Position numbers and translations under genes: made by a program | Assembly (NCBI GenBank): GCA_965235115.1 | Contig: OZ249444.1 | Span: 12,400,001-12,464,000, forward strand | Source of the DNA: Laetmonice hystrix | Taxonomy: Eukaryota | Direction: 5' to 3' | Length of the DNA: 64,000 nucleotides | Part shown: positions 901 to 10,898 of the stretch, one piece after another | How positions within the stretch are numbered: the stretch's first letter is position 1 | Layout of the letters: every line of letters starts with the position of its first letter | The notes under the pieces: generated by a model | Seen by the model: only the letters and a program-made list of their open reading frames with translations | Databases searched by the model: none | What the model was told of the DNA's origin: nothing

Positions 901-1335
901 TGACTTGAGCCACTTTTGTGTGCTACAGAGTAAAATATCAACATTTCTGATGACATACTACTGTATGTAGAGATCTATTCATTACAGACCAGTTTGCAGT
1001 TTTTCACCACTTTCCTGGTGCTCAAAGTCACTGGACCGCCCAGCCTCGCACCACGGCCAATGTTCAAACACCTTGACGGCGGACCTATTTTAAGGCACTC
1101 TTCCGTGTTGCCATGTTGGCAAAACGTTTGAATGCGTCCTTTTTATGGCATATTATTGTAGAATCTTTGCTATCTCGAGTATTGCAGCGCCAGTGTGGAT
1201 GAAAAGGAAAGGGATTTAAGTTGATCGAAGGGCAGGAATCCCACTGTTGATCATCTCATCGATTCCTCATCGGAGGGTATCTCCTGGGTTAGGCCCGACG
1301 TCATCAAACTGGGGAATACCCGACATCTATTTCAG

Positions 1336-1404
1336 TCCAGCACTTAACAAGATCATGATGATCCTTGGGACTATATTGAAATGTGGTTCAAGACTAAGTA
1401 ACAA
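1336..1404 (+). other. Possible upstream (5'UTR or in-frame) exon of the SBP gene
   Basis: It is flanked by tttcag| and |gtaagt. A 73-bp intron (1405-1477) would end at tctacag|, 1 nt before the ATG at 1479. ATG 1355 would be in frame across this junction. Confidence 0.4.
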
Positions 1405-1478
1405 GTAAGTTACTTAGAATTAAGTAAGCAAACATAGGAAAGAAGCCAGGTTGAGACGGAGGTCGTCTGGTCTACAGC

Positions 1479-1621
1479 ATGCAGCTGGGTCTGACCTTAC
1501 AATTGGTGACCGTGTGTGTCGCCATGGGAACAGTCAAGTTAACATCCATCGACGACGATGAAGGTCGGGGAAACATGTGGAAGGTGGCGGTCGGTATGGA
1601 CTGGGGCGCCCACGAGTACAT
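1479..1621 (+). CDS. Secreted family-3 solute-binding-protein-like gene, coding exon 1 (signal peptide, MQLGLTLQLVTVCVAMGTVK...AVGMDWGAHEY)
   Basis: Hydrophobic N-terminus. Donor AT|gtatgt (phase 2) joins the exon at 3903 to give HEYINERG. Confidence 0.8.
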
Positions 1622-1973
1622 GTATGTAGGGCCGCTATATAATCACGTTTTAATGTCGATTCTGAACAGAAACATGGACTCTAAATAACGGAACATGTCA
1701 CCTCCATAACAGTAGGCCTAGGTGGGCAAGACTAAAATATCAAGAGAAGATATATATAGGGTAGAGTCTACCCGGTATATGGCTGGATGTAGTCCATATG
1801 GCGTATGGAGTCATATGGCGTTTCACAAAAAGTATGTCTGCATTGCTGTTCTCCGATATGATCCAATGCTCCCCTGTACCTTTCTATGTGGACTTGGTGG
1901 GCATTATGTAAAATATATTCTGAATGTCGCCAAAATTTAATAACTGAAAATGACCTACTTGGCTACCGAGACC

Positions 1974-2735
1974 CCGGGCTGCGTTCAGATGGGCTGTTCT
2001 TGAAACTCAAACATGTTCTTGTTGTTCGGATGCACTGAGGAACGAATACGAACGTTGTTCTTTTCATCCGAACAGTGCCGAACATGTTCACGAACATTGT
2101 TCTCCCCACTCCCCAACAAGGCAGGGGTGAGAAGAACAAATATGGCGGACTGCATACCATCAACGTCAGTGTTCTCATGTCAAAATTGGAATATTTGTAT
2201 ATTTATTCATGAACAGAGTTATTTTGAAAGAAAAGATGCTTAGTATCAATCATATAGGATACCGGTAATTGACTGACCAAGGAGAGCAGTTAGGCCTAGG
2301 CCTATGTGGTAAACACAGCCGCTGTGGCACTGGGCGTTGTGAAACTTGCGGCAGTTGCGCTAAGCCAAGCTGCCGACGCTGGACAGGTCGATCACAGGTG
2401 CTAGCTTGCAAAGTTGACAGTGGCGGATCCACAGGGGTCCAAAAAGGCCTTGCCTCCCGCCCCCCCCCCCCCCCCAAAAAAAAAAAAAATCCTTTAAAAC
2501 AACTACCAAAGGCATCACGCTGTCACATTTTGAAAGAACTAGTGATTCCTCACCAGATAACTGTTCAATTCATCATTGCTGGGTGCAGCCATTTTGTAAG
2601 GTTATAGTTCTCGGTGTTTGGATGGTGCTATGAAGAACATGTTCCAGGTGCATGTTCTTTGTTGTTTGGATGATCAGGAACATGTTCCTGAAGTGTTCAG
2701 GAACATCAAGAACAGCCCATCCGAACGCAGCCCGG
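1974..2735. mobile_element. Non-autonomous DNA transposon (MITE; Harbinger-like termini) in SBP intron 1
   Basis: About 30-bp TIRs: CCGGGCTGCGTTCAGATGGGCTGTTCTTGA (from 1974) and TCAAGAACAGCCCATCCGAACGCAGCCCGG (to 2735). Subterminal GAACA/TGTTC motifs are repeated. No coding capacity. Confidence 0.7.
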
Positions 2736-3735
2736 GAGTTGTTTTTTATATTCGTACGCACACGGCTATGCAAATTATGGTGGTGCAAATTAAAAGCTCT
2801 CGTATGACCTGAAATTCGTGAGATACCCCCTGATTACATCCAGCCAGAGACCCTATAGCTTCTCTTAATATTTGTACTAGCAAACATATATTTCGAATAT
2901 TGCCAGCATTAAGCCGGGTTTCCATGCACGTTGTCCGTTTCCGATTCGATCTTTTATGTCTATTTCCAATGGGAGTTTCCATGTGTAGGCCTACGTGAAA
3001 TAGACATAAACGATCGAAACGGATAACGAAAATTCTGGAACTACATTCGTTGCGGACTGTTGCTGAAGATGTGTTCGACACCACAATACGTTCAAACGAT
3101 TCATCATGTTTGCGTCCACTCGGGCTAGTTTTTGTAATTTGTGACAATTGGAACGACCGAGCCATTTCCGGTTTATATTGCTATTCAGGAAATAGACTCG
3201 GATAGTAAAAGTGTAGAAAGTCGACGGACATTTAACGGCAATGCGCCAGAGGTGTGGTGTGGTCTCTGATTCGGCCGATTGAAAATTTAGTGCAGTCGAT
3301 TGACCAACTGTTTTAGGTGTTTTTCTTTTTAAATGCACGGGCATCAGGCGTTTGAGAATGTCCGGAAAGAGAAAAGTTGTATAGTCCTCGGAATCGAACC
3401 CCAGCCCGACTTTTACCATAATGGCGGCGCCGACACGATGCCATAGCCATGGTATAGGTAGGTGCCATTTTGAAGATGGCGTTCTTAGTACTTACTACCG
3501 AGTTTATATCCCGAAATTGACTCGGTCGTGTCGATTGGTGCTGTCAGCGCAAGTTCGAAGAAATAACTGGCGCCACCTGGTGAGTATGGTGGAGAATGCA
3601 GGAACCTAAACTGATCCCCTGCCCTGTGAGGCAGGGGACCAGTCTAGCTGGAACCTAACTCTTGAAGAACAGCAGCTGCTGAGACATGGCTCTATTCCGT
3701 TATACTCCGCCAATCAGCTGTAAAAGTAACGTTGA

Positions 3736-3803
3736 TGCTCTCTCCTTTCTCCCTCCCCCTCTCCCTTTCTCTCCTTCTCTATGTCTCTCTGTCTCTCTTT
3801 CTC

Positions 3804-3858
<55 letters not shown>

Positions 3859-3860
3859 CT
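3736..3860. repeat. (CT)n microsatellite
   Basis: Seen directly; it produces the spurious SLSLSL ORF 3781..4014. Confidence 0.95.
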
Positions 3861-3902
3861 AAGTAACGATGTTATGTACACCATTTTATTTTTACTTTTT
3901 AG

Positions 3903-3952
3903 CAACGAGAGGGGTTATTTGACCGGATTCGGAATCGAGTTCGTTGATTTAG
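3903..3952 (+). CDS. SBP-like gene coding exon 2 (NERGYLTGFGIEFVDL)
   Basis: Acceptor tttttag| and donor G|gtaggc. The peptide matches the D..G.L.GFD(I/V)DL motif of SBP_bac_3. Confidence 0.85.
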
Positions 3953-4205
3953 GTAGGCCTATGTTATTGTTACTATTAGATCTCTGTCTCTTTCATGCCA
4001 TATCGATAAGATAATGCTAGAAGATGTAAGTGGCTAAAAGGGGGGGGGATTTAAGTGGATGTTCCGGACGAAGTTGTCGGAGGCCTATAATATTCTGTTT
4101 TTATGGCTTCGCGTAAAGTTCCCACTTGTACTAAGATTTTGAAAGAATCTTTTATACGATATCAAGAAAAAAAATACTTGTCACATTCGTGCTCGTTTTC
4201 CTCAG

Positions 4206-4301
4206 TATGCGAGGCTGCAGGGATGATTTGCCTGACAGTGAGAGACACATACGAAAACTGTTGGAACACATCAAACGGGCAACATGCCACAGGAGGCAAA
4301 G
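4206..4301 (+). CDS. SBP-like gene coding exon 3 (VCEAAGMICLTVRDTYENCWNTSNGQHATGGK)
   Basis: Acceptor ttttcctcag| and donor AAAG|gtaaaa, phase 1/1. It contains a C-x6-C as in HisJ/LAO. Confidence 0.85.
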
Positions 4302-4887
4302 GTAAAACTACTGATGTAGGCCTAATATTCTACCCCAAGTATGCATGTATCAGGAGCATCAGGAGCCATTTTGAAGTGTGTGTTATCGTTGACCTCTTCC
4401 AAGTAAGCTTGGCTCTTTTATATAAACATAAATGATAAATTTAACAATATAAATGAAAGATATAAATATAATTTTTAAAACATATAAATGAAAATATTTA
4501 TAACGATGGGAATTACTACCTTGACTGTTTTGAAATCTTTATGTACTGACCTTTTATATGGCTTTGGAAGATGTATGGGTGGTACAGGTCACGCCCGTCC
4601 CATCCAGTTCCGACGCCCCTGTGTATTGGGACCAAGCTTATCCTATAATATGTTTTATGATAACATATAAGAGTTAACCTATATTACCTACTGCAAGTGC
4701 ATATTCTTAAAAATATTTTGGTTTACTTATCAGGACCATATCCGGAGAGGGCGGTTCCAGGTTCATCCTCCCCATGGCAAATTTTGAATTCTATATTTGA
4801 AACGATGCTCCTGGTGCAGTCTGTGATTGCTTTGTTCTCCCGTTCTCCACAGAGCGCTGTACAAATTATCATTATCATATTTTACAG

Positions 4888-5061
4888 GTTTGCAGGGTCG
4901 CTGGTATGATGCCTGTATGGGGTGGGCAGTCACAGTCGAACGCATACACGTTTTCTCCTTCTCAGCCTCGTACCTGGAGCCGGACACGAGTGGCACCTTT
5001 TTCGTAAGAAAAGGCGAGGCAGAGGCGTTCAACCCCTTTGACCTTCAAAACAAGAAAATAG
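4888..5061 (+). CDS. SBP-like gene coding exon 4 (GLQGRWYDACMGWAVTVERIHVFSFSASYLEPDTSGTFFVRKGEAEAFNPFDLQNKKI)
   Basis: Acceptor tttacag| and donor ATAG|gtaaat. The peptide matches the L..G.(Y/I)DA......T.ER...F.F...Y core of family-3 SBPs. Confidence 0.9.
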
Positions 5062-5269
5062 GTAAATTATGAGGGCTAGGATACGTGCGTTTGTAGTCCA
5101 ATTTTGCGGTCCATAAAACTCCTACCAGACCGTTTTATGCTCTGCAAGACCATTGTAGAGATTCAATTCTTACCAGTTCTTTATCATTTTTTACAATATA
5201 TACAGACAATTATCATAGCCCCCTTTTTTCTGTAACTTATGTTAGCTTCTTTTCCTATATTGTTTTAAG

Positions 5270-5406
5270 GATTTTTAAAAGGCTGGACATATTCGGAAGA
5301 TTGCATTGCAAGGGAGAAAAGGATTCAAAATCACAAGCTTAAACAGATACAGATACACCAATCGGAGGGCCCTAAACAAATTATTGAAGAACTCGAAAAC
5401 GGAGAG
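5270..5406 (+). CDS. SBP-like gene coding exon 5 (GFLKGWTYSEDCIAREKRIQNHKLKQIQIHQSEGPKQIIEELENGE)
   Basis: Acceptor tgttttaag| and donor GAG|gtgacg. KKIGFLKG matches the K.IGV..G motif, and L.NGE precedes (F/I)DA. Confidence 0.85.
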
Positions 5407-5748
5407 GTGACGATTTATGCTAATGTTATACATGAATGAACCATGATAGTCAAATAGCTGTTGCCTTTGTTACCTACGTGAACGTGTGGCAATTCAGGAA
5501 TAAGTCTGAAGTTGAAAGTGATATCTTTTAGCCTGGACTAAGGACATCTTTTCGAGTCAATACTTTCCTTTTCATATTACCGTTCAAATTTTCCTTCTTT
5601 CTCCCCGTATTTCTTTATTTTATTTGAAGTTTGAAATGTTACAGTATTCATATATTAATTCAATCTTTGCGGGGCCGAAAACACTCTGCCTCTTGTCATT
5701 TCCATTCCTACGCGACTACATCCGACACCTTGCTATAACCCTCTGCAG

Positions 5749-5965
5749 TTTGACGCCATCTTCGCTGGGGGCCAGACATTCTCCAAAGCTCAGCGTGCGA
5801 CGATTGAGGCAGTTCCGGGTTTGAAAGTAACATGCATGTTGAACGGTAACGCTATGATGACGAGAAAAACGAGTTTTTTTAACGTTAAATGGAATGTTGG
5901 TTTCCATAAAGTCCGCGCCAATGGACGCTTCCAGAAGTTATGCGATCGGTGGCGCAAAGAGTATG
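5749..5965 (+). CDS. SBP-like gene coding exon 6 (FDAIFAGGQ...CMLNGNAMMTRKTSFFNVKWNVGFHKVRANGRFQKLCDRWRKEY)
   Basis: Acceptor ctctgcag| (phase 0) and donor TATG|gtacgt. The C-terminal part matches the RK....L...N..L..L...G.Y..L...W pattern. Confidence 0.85.
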
Positions 5966-6207
5966 GTACGTCTCGCTCTATTTTATTTTAACGGAACCCA
6001 AAAGATCAAAGCGTGTTGTGATTCACGTACGTCTCGGTGCGGATCAGTTACCTGAACTCACCATAAAACCCTTTACACTTCAGTTACACGACACAGTAGA
6101 TTTTGTATAACAACTAAAACGGTTTTTATTCAGTATTATAAATTTTAAGACTTCAGGTGGGATGATTTGGTATGATTTATTACGGTATTGTATTTCATTT
6201 TTTGCAG

Positions 6208-6236
6208 GTGATATTGGGGAGATACGGTGCCTTTGA
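6208..6236 (+). CDS. SBP-like gene last coding exon (GDIGEIRCL*)
   Basis: Strong acceptor tttcattttttgcag|, phase-compatible with exon 6. TGA at 6234-6236. The seven exons sum to 846 nt = 281 aa plus stop. Confidence 0.7.
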
Positions 6237-6348
6237 GTAGTGGGCCTACATGATTATGCCTGTGATTGAAGATTTCCAGGAGATTCTACAATGCTGTGAT
6301 AAACTGGGACATTCAATGCATCTGTCCGTTCGCAGTAGAATCAACCCA

Positions 6349-6354
6349 AATAAA
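6349..6354 (+). terminator. Candidate polyadenylation signal AATAAA of the SBP-like gene
   Basis: The hexamer lies 113 nt after the stop codon. Confidence 0.4.
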
Positions 6355-7129
6355 TGCAGTAAGATAAATTCCTATACAGCAACCTGAGCATGGCCGACAC
6401 TGAATAGCAGATATTGTATAGGTGAACCTTGTTGCTGTTCCGCTAATTCTTACCGATTTCAACCGAACCCACTATACCCCGGCCTTTACCTGACCAAGCT
6501 TGGAAGGATGGTGCCAAGAAGCATCCCCCAGAACTTTGTTTCGATATGAAAATGAATATCCTGTCGGACTAGTAAAAAACTAAGACTGATAACAGTGAAT
6601 GGTAGCCTAACTGAGAGCGGCAGTGGAAGGAATTTATTTGGATGGCAGGATGTCAGATGGCGTTAGTAGGCCTAGCACTGCGGTGTGGTTTGTTGGGTGG
6701 TCTCATGACGGCTACTGTAAATACACCTAGATAATGATCGCTTTAAATCTCATAGGTCTGGCTTTAAGACAGAATGCTACAAGGGTAGTTACGCTAAAAA
6801 TCCACGCTTTGACTTTCGCCTCGATGCTACTTTAAAGCGACAGTAACTGGCGTCTATAAATAGCACATCGACCGTTAGGAAGGAAGCCTCTTGCTCAATG
6901 CTGAAGGACGAGACTGTCGCTGTAACATGTCGAGGGAATACCGCAATTAAATTTGGTGGCTCCGCCTAGCGATATCCGAAGGTTCTCCATCGTGATTTGT
7001 CCGCATACTCACCAGGTGGCGCCAGTTATTTCCTCAAACTGGAATTACGGCAATCCGAGGGAGCGCGAGTGTGATTTGTACCGATTGGATATCTCGCAGT
7101 ACTACTGTGGCCGAAAAGCACAAACATTC

Positions 7130-8639: not shown

Positions 8640-9955
8640 AGAGATGAAAAAATGAGAAATGAGAAATGAGATGAGATGGATGCGTCAGGTTAAAAACATC
8701 ACAGAATGCTGCAAGATTCAAAGGTAGTTCCGATATTTACATCTCAGTAATCTTTTTGGGGCATTTTTAAAACATGACATTTTAGGAATCTTTTTCAGGT
8801 TGACGTCCATATCGTTCCACATAATTGCACCTTTATAGCAGATACTTCTTTTGAATGCCTCAGTGTTGGGACGCGGAACTATAAAGGTTTTGTAATCATG
8901 AAGCCTGGTAGGCAGAACTCTGGTGTCAATGTAAACCGGATCGTTTCTTCTTTGATATATAAGGTTTAACAAGTATGCATTACGCCTGTCTTCAAGGAGG
9001 TTAATTTTAGCTCTTGAGTGGACGTCGAGTGTACTGGTTTCTGGCGGCAGGTTAAGGCATAGCTTTAGTCCTCTGTTTTTGGAGCCTTTGTAGTTTATTC
9101 AGGTGCCGCCGGTTGGTGCCGCTGTAAAGGATGTCACCATATTCAATGTAGGGAAGGACCATTATTTTGTATAACATGAGTCGTACATCAGTGGCAAGGT
9201 ATGGACGTAGCTTCGTTAAAAGGTATAGTTTGTGACTGGCCTTTTTGATTGTAAGTGATATATGCTTTTCAAAAGTCAGAGATCTATCTAGCGTGATACC
9301 AAGGTATTTGTAGGTATGCACCATGTCTAGGAAGGTATTTGCTACTTTAAGTGCAGGACTAGGGAGGATCTTTACTTTCTGTGGGGAAGCAAAGGCCATT
9401 ATTTTAGTTTTCTTAGTATTTCTAGTTAGGCAATTTTTATTGCACCAGTTACTCACGATATTCAAGTCTTCTTGAAGAAGTAGGGTCATTTTATCGAAGT
9501 CAGATCCGGAAATATACATCATAGTGTCATCAGCATGAAGTTTCACAGAAGAGTTCACAACATGAGAAGAGATATTGTTGACATAACACAGAAATAAAAC
9601 TGGACCCAAGATTGATCCTTGTGGTACACCACAGGAGCTAGTCAATGAACTAGACACCAGATTGTTAACGTAGACAGATTGTGTTCTTTCACATAAGTAA
9701 TTTCGCATCCATGCAACTGCATTTTTAGAGAGACCCAAGCATGAAAGCTTTTTTAACAGTATATTGTGATCAACTGTGTCAAACGCCTTTTTAAAGTCTA
9801 CAAATACAGCCAGCGTAGCTTGTGAGTTGTTCATTGCCGTATAGATAGCATCTGTTGGATGCTAGATAGATGGTTGAGATTGTAGAAAGGCCTTTTCTGA
9901 AGCCACCTTGATCAGGATTTAATAAGTTATTTGAATTAAGGTAATCCATTAGTTG
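8640..9955 (-). mobile_element. 5'-truncated CR1/L2-group LINE, reverse-transcriptase pseudogene
   Basis: ORF 9052-9834 has VFVDFKKAFDTVDH, GVPQGSILGPVLF, HADD (YADD altered) and YKYLG. A +1 frameshift at about 9082 links it to the C-terminal ORF 8718-8972. NLLNPDQGGFRK lies upstream at about 9890-9950. The 3' tail is short (CATCT/CATTTCT) repeats at about 8640-8680. Confidence 0.93.
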
Positions 9956-10898
9956 TTCTTAATTTCGCCTAGAGCATATAGTGTCGTTCCGTGTTGACAA
10001 CTTTACCGACAGGCGGCAGCACTAGTCTATAATTGCGGGAGCCGTAATGCTAAAACATAGATATACACGAAACATCATGGAATCCAAGGACACATCCTAC
10101 GTAGCAGTGGAAAATATATCTGTTTGAAGATTTCCTTTTTAATTGTATCTTTCTCAACTGAGAAGTGTTAATTAACATGGACCACACATGAGTCGTAGGC
10201 TACTAGATCTATAGACGCCTCCATCAAACCAGCATTTTTTCATTAGTGCATGCCTATTGCACATCTTCAAAAAAAGTTGTTTTTATTGAGGGTTGTTTTT
10301 TTTTTGTGTTTTGATTTTGTTAGTCGCGAAAGGGTTTCTCCCATTCAAGCTATCAATTTTGAAATAGACTTTTTACATGTAGAATTCATAAGATTAGAAG
10401 ACCAGTTCACATGTGGCACAAATGGAACCGTACCTGAGCTACACTAAGAAACCATTAAACACCATTAAACCGTTAACCCCCCCCCCCCCCCCCATTATCA
10501 GTTATTTCCACGCCCTGTACTGTGTATAGAGATATAGATCACACTGTACTGAAATGTGTTGTGGTTTTTTGTATATTTCAAAATATCCTGCAAGGGATGC
10601 AGTGCTGGCATGTTGTGACATCGAACTTAGAAATGGGAACTTGACAAAATTATAATCCTATGCCCTATAATGTTCTTAAGTCATTAAATTTGAAGGAAAA
10701 AATTGAATTGAGTCTCCTGTCTTCTTTGATTTGTTGATGCCATTAGGCCTAAAGGAAGGTCAAAGATATATCCATATAGTCTGCCCGAAAACCAATGAAA
10801 AAAACCAACGCCTAACTGGATGAAAATTGCCCAGAAGTTGGGAAACGTGCATGTTTAGAATTTAGGCCTATAATAGGCCTAGGCCGTAAACACTGAGC

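Follow-up and report, generated by a model that had tools for sequence, protein, structure and literature searches.

What does a bacterial-type solute-binding protein (SBP), standing alone and interrupted by introns, do in an animal genome? The family 3 SBP fold is textbook knowledge in two settings, bacterial import through ATP-binding cassette (ABC) transporters and the ligand-binding core of glutamate receptors. The gene considered here lies on the plus strand, at positions 1479-6236 of a 64,000-nucleotide stretch (hereafter the window) of the Laetmonice hystrix assembly GCA_965235115.1 (contig OZ249444.1, positions 12,400,001 to 12,464,000), and a preliminary description of these letters had taken it for an animal gene encoding a secreted binding protein. 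We found that it is an expressed seven-exon gene belonging to an old animal family, and we think it probable that its product is a secreted, disulfide-stabilised Venus-flytrap protein of an ABC-independent family, which would close on a carboxylate ligand and sequester or present it; most of the doubt bears on the functional half of this statement.

Joining the seven exons by script gave a coding sequence (CDS) of 846 nt, that is, 281 amino acids followed by TGA, and all six introns start with GT, end with AG and separate exons of compatible phases, exactly as first described (coordinates are collected in Table 1). The motifs quoted at that time are all present; the spacing written for GRWYDA, TVER-IHV-FSFS and RK...WN deviates by one to a few residues, which is immaterial. 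The statement that the list of open reading frames (ORFs) misses the gene entirely is correct in that no full gene is listed, but two pieces of it, 4103-4435 and 4827-5072, are. An in-frame stop is located 8 codons 5' of the ATG and led us to reject a larger gene with further coding exons upstream, although the 5' end of the transcript lies outside the region examined. When the spliced protein was used in a tblastn search, no second copy of the gene was found in the 64-kb window.

We then looked at transcription, using four sequencing runs (X1 to X4) from one sample, the same as that of the assembly, whose contigs were mapped on positions 1300-6700. The X4 contigs carry all six predicted junctions exactly (1621>3903, 3952>4206, 4301>4888, 5061>5270, 5406>5749 and 5965>6208), whereas none of the six was found in runs X1 to X3, whose contigs run colinear through the introns and are thus DNA-like. 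The library type of X4 is unrecorded; we infer that it is RNA because its contigs skip the introns, the DNA-like runs do not, and the genome search gave no intronless copy. The proposal of an intron-bearing, transcribed animal gene is therefore borne out, down to the last of the spliced junctions that had been predicted. The 5' untranslated region (UTR) is long, since one X4 contig extends at least 223 nt upstream of position 1300. Another X4 contig, covering 5377-5776, is unspliced through intron 5 with a depth of 23 (compared with 300 for the spliced form), which indicates pre-mRNA or intron retention. Only four single-nucleotide polymorphisms were seen in the reads over the gene (N88K, H176N and two synonymous ones), too few for any inference on selection.

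To which fold does the encoded protein belong? The Pfam scan was run on single exons of the gene, and full-length relatives, a family hidden Markov model (HMM) and the closest relative, P0013, were used as proxies. With these short exons, exon 4 alone matched SBP_bac_3 (PF00497; 13.1 bits, E 0.085), and a six-frame PF00497 search of the genome missed the gene and returned genes of the ionotropic glutamate receptor (iGluR) type. As for the relatives, ten proteins 27-45% identical to the window protein all scored above the SBP_bac_3 gathering score of 26.4 bits (27-39 bits). A HMMER search with exon 6 brought up 38 family relatives together with two chance matches to repeat proteins; the window protein itself is absent from the protein collections. 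The family HMM, built without the window gene, gave the spliced window protein 320.6 bits, which is far beyond chance. The same HMM gave 37-55 bits to Escherichia coli HisJ, ArtJ, ArtI and ArgT and to four plasmid SBPs, 10.8 bits to GlnH, and at most 10.8 bits to the iGluR-type ligand-binding domain (LBD) exons of this genome. In a direct comparison with E. coli ArtJ, residues 38-268 of the window protein aligned with 21.6% identity (BLASTP E 5e-10, in a small set).

Searches against solved structures led to the same place. A profile made from alignment A1 (21 relatives plus the exons of the window gene) matched the bacterial substrate-binding domains of GlnPQ (4e-21), STM4351 (1e-15), ArtJ (1e-13), HisJ (5e-12) and LAO (8e-8); the best single-domain chain had an E value of 1e-15, and the best 60 matches in the PDB were all bacterial-type or derived proteins, with no glutamate receptor among them. 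The AlphaFold2 model of P0013, computed from the A1 alignment, has a pLDDT of 90.6 and a pTM of 0.81, and shows the two-lobed Venus-flytrap fold with a two-strand hinge. Submitted to Foldseek, this model retrieved bacterial family 3 SBPs in all of the top 50 matches (LAO, NocT, HisJ, ArtJ, STM4351; E 6e-16 to 6e-14, template-modelling score by target 0.58-0.74), and bacterial SBP clusters exclusively in the AFDB clusters and the ESM Atlas. Judged from its sequence and these proxies, the window protein is thus a stand-alone, single-domain periplasmic binding protein (PBP) type II, or Venus-flytrap, of the HisJ/ArtJ/LAO (His/Arg/Lys/opine) branch of SBP_bac_3, in agreement with the family assigned to it at the outset.

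The preliminary description had mentioned similar proteins in other marine invertebrates, and these do exist. Named members occur in Lingula anatina (several, among them XP_013403832), Branchiostoma lanceolatum (XP_066301533), Amphiura filiformis (more than 12), the crinoid Anneissia japonica and the hemichordate Ptychodera flava, and unnamed ones come from transcriptome and metagenome assemblies. The named relatives are 33-45% identical to the window protein over the whole domain and share with the window gene the eight cysteines, the motifs, and intron positions and phases. In a tree with eight bacterial outgroup sequences the animal family formed one clade on a long branch, with a Shimodaira-Hasegawa-like approximate likelihood ratio test (SH-aLRT) value of 100. 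Textbooks cover both the fold and the Pfam family, and the animal proteins are already public under automatic NCBI names such as "arginine-binding periplasmic protein-like" and "ABC transporter arginine-binding protein 1-like"; the family itself is unstudied, a full-text search having found no paper on it, which does not disprove that one exists.

The age of the family can be read from its introns. For each of three annotated genes, the exact CDS was matched to its genomic locus and the introns were placed on the family alignment, in which those of the window gene fall at columns 152 (phase 2), 170 (phase 1), 203 (phase 1), 263 (phase 1), 313 (phase 0) and 391 (phase 1). All six recur in the Lingula gene with column and phase unchanged, and this gene has one more in its N-terminal extension; the Branchiostoma gene shares five and has one extra; the Amphiura gene shares four, two others being displaced, and has one extra. 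Even exon lengths agree: the Lingula gene matches exon 2 (50 nt) and exon 3 (96 nt), and the 137-nt exon 5 is common to Lingula, Branchiostoma and the paralogs described below. Because positions and phases are shared by a lophotrochozoan, a chordate and an echinoderm, the gene already carried introns in their common ancestor. The family is therefore an old bilaterian one and not a recent acquisition. A member of different structure, P0047 (278 aa), was seen as a single uninterrupted ORF at 10001-10837 of the stretch excised from contig ctg31492l (ENA ERZ25069853), a long (204 kb), gene-poor and eukaryote-like contig; it is either an intronless, perhaps retrocopied, member or comes from a lineage having lost all introns.

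The preliminary description did not foresee that the window gene has close company on its own chromosome. A profile search of the assembly followed by exon-by-exon modelling, with a script that reproduces window exons 3-6 exactly, found about 21 copies on this one chromosome: 18 loci at C10:24.158-24.278 Mb, two at C10:10.648-10.678 Mb, and the window gene at C10:12.40 Mb. Exon borders are uniform among the paralogs (96 nt, 165-180 nt, 137 nt, with 131-146 nt in three copies, and 214-226 nt). The models of exons 3-6 were clean for 15 paralogs and, but for one stop at a join, for a sixteenth; two were partial, their loci looking truncated. Some copies are identical across exons 3-6 and must therefore be recent duplicates; the family has expanded by tandem duplication and is still duplicating in this genome. 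Unlike its named animal relatives, the window gene is a singleton on a long branch; 12 Mb separate it from the main cluster of paralogs, and its identity to the nearest paralog is 44%. In intron 4 of one paralog (C10:24196301-24196894) we observed eight tandem copies of a 14-residue piece, nearly all 69 nt apart, which corresponds to the beginning of exon 5 (187-200 in the family HMM) and lies just upstream of the real exon 5.

We next consider where the protein might act. Its first 19 residues are uncharged and moderately hydrophobic (mean Kyte-Doolittle value of 1.59), with A-M-G preceding Thr18 as a putative cut site; the anchors found in relatives are longer (25 residues). This signal-peptide-like N-terminus, first described as hydrophobic, fits a cleaved signal peptide, so that the protein is probably secreted. 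In many other members the place of the signal peptide is taken by an N-terminal 25-residue type II anchor followed by a low-complexity stalk, making them membrane-tethered rather than secreted, a second point absent from the preliminary description. Both arrangements occur among the paralogs: the eight plus-strand ones whose first exon was translated have short signal peptides, whereas three minus-strand ones and the two distant ones have an anchor plus stalk. The existence of tethered paralogs suggests that the site of action is the cell surface. In the mature part, cysteines 66, 73, 83, 106, 166, 229, 265 and 280 coincide with the eight conserved cysteine columns of the family, which would fit an extracellular, disulfide-bonded protein. 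Lobe 1 holds an insert of about 11 residues (NCW..GG.GL) that distinguishes the animal family from bacterial SBPs, and the family motifs (GHD.GAHEY, NCW, GG.GL, WYDAC.GW, MMTRKD and WN.GF) are all found, two of them as the minor variants GMDWGAHEY and MMTRKT. Nothing hydrophobic follows the domain, after which the transcript goes into its UTR; the absence of a transmembrane or channel segment, claimed from the start, is thus confirmed.

Residues contacting the ligand in LAO and HisJ were mapped by HMM alignment at about 20% identity, and the columns are accordingly approximate. Across 23 relatives, 16 paralogs and the window protein itself, three positions never vary, namely the Arg77 equivalent (the R of TVER), a Tyr at the Phe52 position and a Trp at the Ser120 position. 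The Ser70 position is nearly always Gly, the residue of ArtJ (3 of the 23 relatives differ), and in most members an aromatic residue stands at the Tyr14 position. By contrast, the equivalents of Ser72, Thr121 and Gln122 differ between paralogs, and the periphery of the pocket, Ala/Thr/Tyr/Gly in the window protein, is different in other members. This pattern of a conserved carboxylate clamp beside an aromatic surface, with a variable periphery, would indicate the ligand class, and the protein likely acts outside the cell by binding a small molecule that bears a carboxylate. In such a scheme the two lobes would close round a small ligand whose carboxylate is held by the invariant Arg and whose body packs on the invariant Tyr/Trp/aromatic pocket; the variable peripheral positions of the paralogs may tune specificity; and the loaded protein would either sequester the ligand or present it to a non-ABC membrane partner, a transporter or a receptor.

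An ABC partner was indeed looked for. The importer permease BPD_transp_1 (PF00528) gave no match at E <= 0.01 in six frames of the 627-Mb genome, while 14 of 14 control prokaryotes were positive, in keeping with the earlier statement that the cognate importer is lacking. With bacterial class F SBPs (LAO/ArgT, HisJ, ArtJ, STM4351, NocT/OccJ) the two-lobed PBP type II fold is shared over the whole length, as are the Arg clamp, the aromatic residues at the Phe52 and Tyr14 positions and the Gly at the ArtJ-type Ser70. Unlike the bacterial proteins, which belong to ABC operons, the animal ones are found in a genome without the ABC permease, the window gene has six spliceosomal introns, and the proteins have eight conserved cysteines, the insert, a Trp in place of Ser120, no conserved Asp161, and a eukaryotic signal peptide or type II anchor; full-length identity is about 20-27%.

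Several points weigh against the binder that we propose. LAO Asp161, the Asp that takes the alpha-ammonium group, is not conserved: it is Gly in the window protein and G/T/S/D/A/F/P/I across the family. Because this Asp is lost, the ligand may not be a free amino acid. The pocket mapping is itself uncertain at such low identity, the structural model is that of a relative with 45% identity rather than of the window protein, and secretion was deduced from reading the N-terminus by eye and from a hydrophobicity count. The evidence for expression comes from a single run of unrecorded library type.

The loss of the Asp would also suit a fold recruited as an enzyme or as a non-binding structural protein, like cyclohexadienyl dehydratase (CDT) or the N-domain of MltF within SBP family 3, and cyclohexadienyl dehydratase and its reconstructed ancestors are indeed among the profile matches (E about 1e-7). 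These CDT-type matches are weaker than those to true binders, however, the clamp Arg and the aromatic pocket are invariant in all members and paralogs, which is a binder pattern, and the peripheral residues vary among paralogs as expected for diversifying specificity; we hold this alternative to be quite unlikely. We give slightly less weight still, and consider it very improbable, that the protein is an iGluR LBD that has lost its channel and become a soluble decoy. The iGluR LBD (S1S2) shares the superfold and has, in principle, the same carboxylate-binding Arg position, and since the genome has channel-less iGluR-type LBD genes on another chromosome the route exists in principle. Such a decoy would be comparable to the acetylcholine-binding protein (AChBP) of molluscs, which is secreted, stands alone and is homologous to the ligand-binding domain of nicotinic receptors. 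That likeness is conceptual only, a soluble binder made from a domain of a larger machine; the fold is unrelated, and AChBP derives from its receptor family whereas the present family does not group with iGluRs. The window protein also differs from the iGluR LBD in having no channel insertion and no Lig_chan-Glu_bd signature: PF10613 and PF00060 gave nothing in the window exons (E <= 10) or in the ten relatives (E <= 1), phmmer of the window protein against the iGluR-type LBD exons of this genome found nothing significant, and the KWW..C end and PLTIT-type S1 motif of iGluRs are absent. With no iGluR signature and negligible profile scores, the decoy was rejected, and the bacterial affinity claimed in the preliminary description stands in this respect, the window protein not falling with iGluR-type LBDs by sequence.

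Where, then, does the family come from? A recent bacterial transfer, or contamination of the assembly, has practically nothing to recommend it beyond the bacterial-type name of the Pfam family, and we give it next to no credence. The six spliceosomal introns, the spliced transcripts, the animal repeats in intron 1, the roughly 20 intron-bearing paralogs and an identity to bacterial proteins of at most 27.5% all oppose it, and it is refuted by intron positions and phases shared across phyla. The earlier suggestion of a possible horizontal acquisition accordingly fails for a recent event and survives only for a very ancient one, with no donor. In that form, a bacterial gene would have entered in or before the bilaterian stem and then gained introns, cysteines and eukaryotic targeting signals, a history compatible with the proposed function. 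It would account for the scores of the family, 37-55 bits to bacterial HisJ/ArtJ-type SBPs against at most 11 bits to the iGluR-type LBDs of the same genome, for relatives without a Lig_chan-Glu_bd signature, for the bacterial-type or derived nature of the top 60 PDB matches, and for the patchy distribution of named members, those found here all being from bilaterian marine invertebrates, in searches whose sensitivity was not adequate for non-bilaterian animals and protists. Losses explain this patchiness equally well, however, and the animal clade sits on a long branch. Moreover, no donor has come to light: identity to the best bacterial matches is 24-27.5% (27.5% for P0013), the window protein itself reaches 31.7% at best, only over a 126-residue local match, the best-matching bacterial genes sit in classical ABC operons, and motif scans with P0013 and with a tighter alignment, A2, found the signature motifs of the family in none of 185,579 prokaryotic species. 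We thus regard the ancient transfer as possible but somewhat doubtful; any bacterial origin would predate the protostome-deuterostome split.

A separate observation concerns the iGluR-type genes. Contig C20 carries, at no fewer than seven loci (five of them Pfam-scanned or read through), a second and unrelated set of channel-less iGluR-type LBD genes, for example at 3297868-3298395, 11803635-11804156 and 10341772-10342299. In these single exons the end of S1 (Lig_chan-Glu_bd) is joined straight to S2 with no pore, and the exons finish in the iGluR-type KWW..C and a C-terminal hydrophobic tail, either M4-like or a glycosylphosphatidylinositol signal.

Coming back to the stand-alone binders, they document a third setting for the fold, that of old bilaterian, secreted or tethered, cysteine-rich proteins without either of the usual partners. 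The database names containing "periplasmic" and "ABC transporter" cannot be literal in animals and are corrected here. The family also provides a concrete set of proteins for expression and ligand screening, which bears on solute sensing and capture outside animal cells and on the relation between the receptor and transporter branches of the fold. Soft-bodied marine animals have long been known to take up dissolved organic matter. It is tempting, although we consider it unlikely, to see in the family an ancient ABC-independent SBP capture system of marine invertebrates, in which secreted or tethered binders on outer epithelia would trap dissolved solutes that carry a carboxylate, be they amino acids, osmolytes of the opine or betaine kind, or microbial signals, and pass them to transporters of the solute carrier (SLC) type or to receptors. 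If true, this system would be the metazoan counterpart of bacterial SBP-dependent uptake and sensing, and could underlie the uptake of dissolved organic matter just mentioned.

Table 1. Parts of the window gene (window positions) and positions of its paralogs on the chromosome (C10 positions).
Feature	Position	Strand	Remarks
5' UTR	1300..1478	+	minimum extent; X4 contig (record 25, 1002 nt) covers 1300-1621
Exon 1 (CDS)	1479..1621	+	ATG, uncharged hydrophobic N-terminus of 17-19 residues, start of lobe 1, ends ...GAHEY; phase-2 donor
Intron 1	1622..3902	+	2281 nt, repeat-filled
Exon 2	3903..3952	+	50 nt; GYLTGFGIEFVDL strand-helix start of lobe 1
Exon 3	4206..4301	+	96 nt; C66, C73, C83 and family-specific insert NCW...GG.G
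Exon 4	4888..5061	+	174 nt; WYDAC(106)MGWAVTVER with invariant carboxylate-clamp Arg, then FSFS, hinge into lobe 2
Exon 5	5270..5406	+	137 nt; GFLKGW (invariant Trp), C166, lobe 2
Exon 6	5749..5965	+	217 nt; FDAIF, C229, MMTRK, WNVGF, FQKLC(265); return to lobe 1 and C-terminal helices
Exon 7 (CDS end)	6208..6236	+	last conserved Cys, C280; TGA at 6234-6236
3' UTR	6237..6626	+	about 390 nt, limit of X4 contig (record 29, covers 6207-6626)
Tandem array of 18 paralogs	C10:24158001-24278000
Two paralogs, 1.7 Mb upstream of window	C10:10648001-10678000

Intron 1 is filled with repeats, and in the DNA-like runs the depth rises to thousands across 1662-3652. Its segment 1763-2863 consists of nested insertions resembling miniature inverted-repeat transposable elements (MITEs). 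The inner element measures about 764 nt; its inverted ends, 31 nt each (1973-2003 and 2706-2736), are 97% complementary, and a pair of 32-nt arms (1763-1794 and 2832-2863) encloses it. Because contigs of the DNA-like runs jump from 1977 to 2758 across it, and the depth is in the thousands, we read this element as high-copy and possibly polymorphic here. Further downstream, the segment 3110-3652, where depth in the DNA-like runs climbs to about 90,000, is a repeat present in very many copies in this genome; imperfect inverted arms of 33 nt (3145-3177 and 3505-3537) flank it. Near 2459-2490 the intron also contains a C/A homopolymer, and near 3744-3867 a CT microsatellite. Outside the gene, the longest ORF nearby, at 9052-9834 on the minus strand, encodes 260 aa that are reverse-transcriptase-like and is probably a fragment of a retrotransposon without long terminal repeats (non-LTR).

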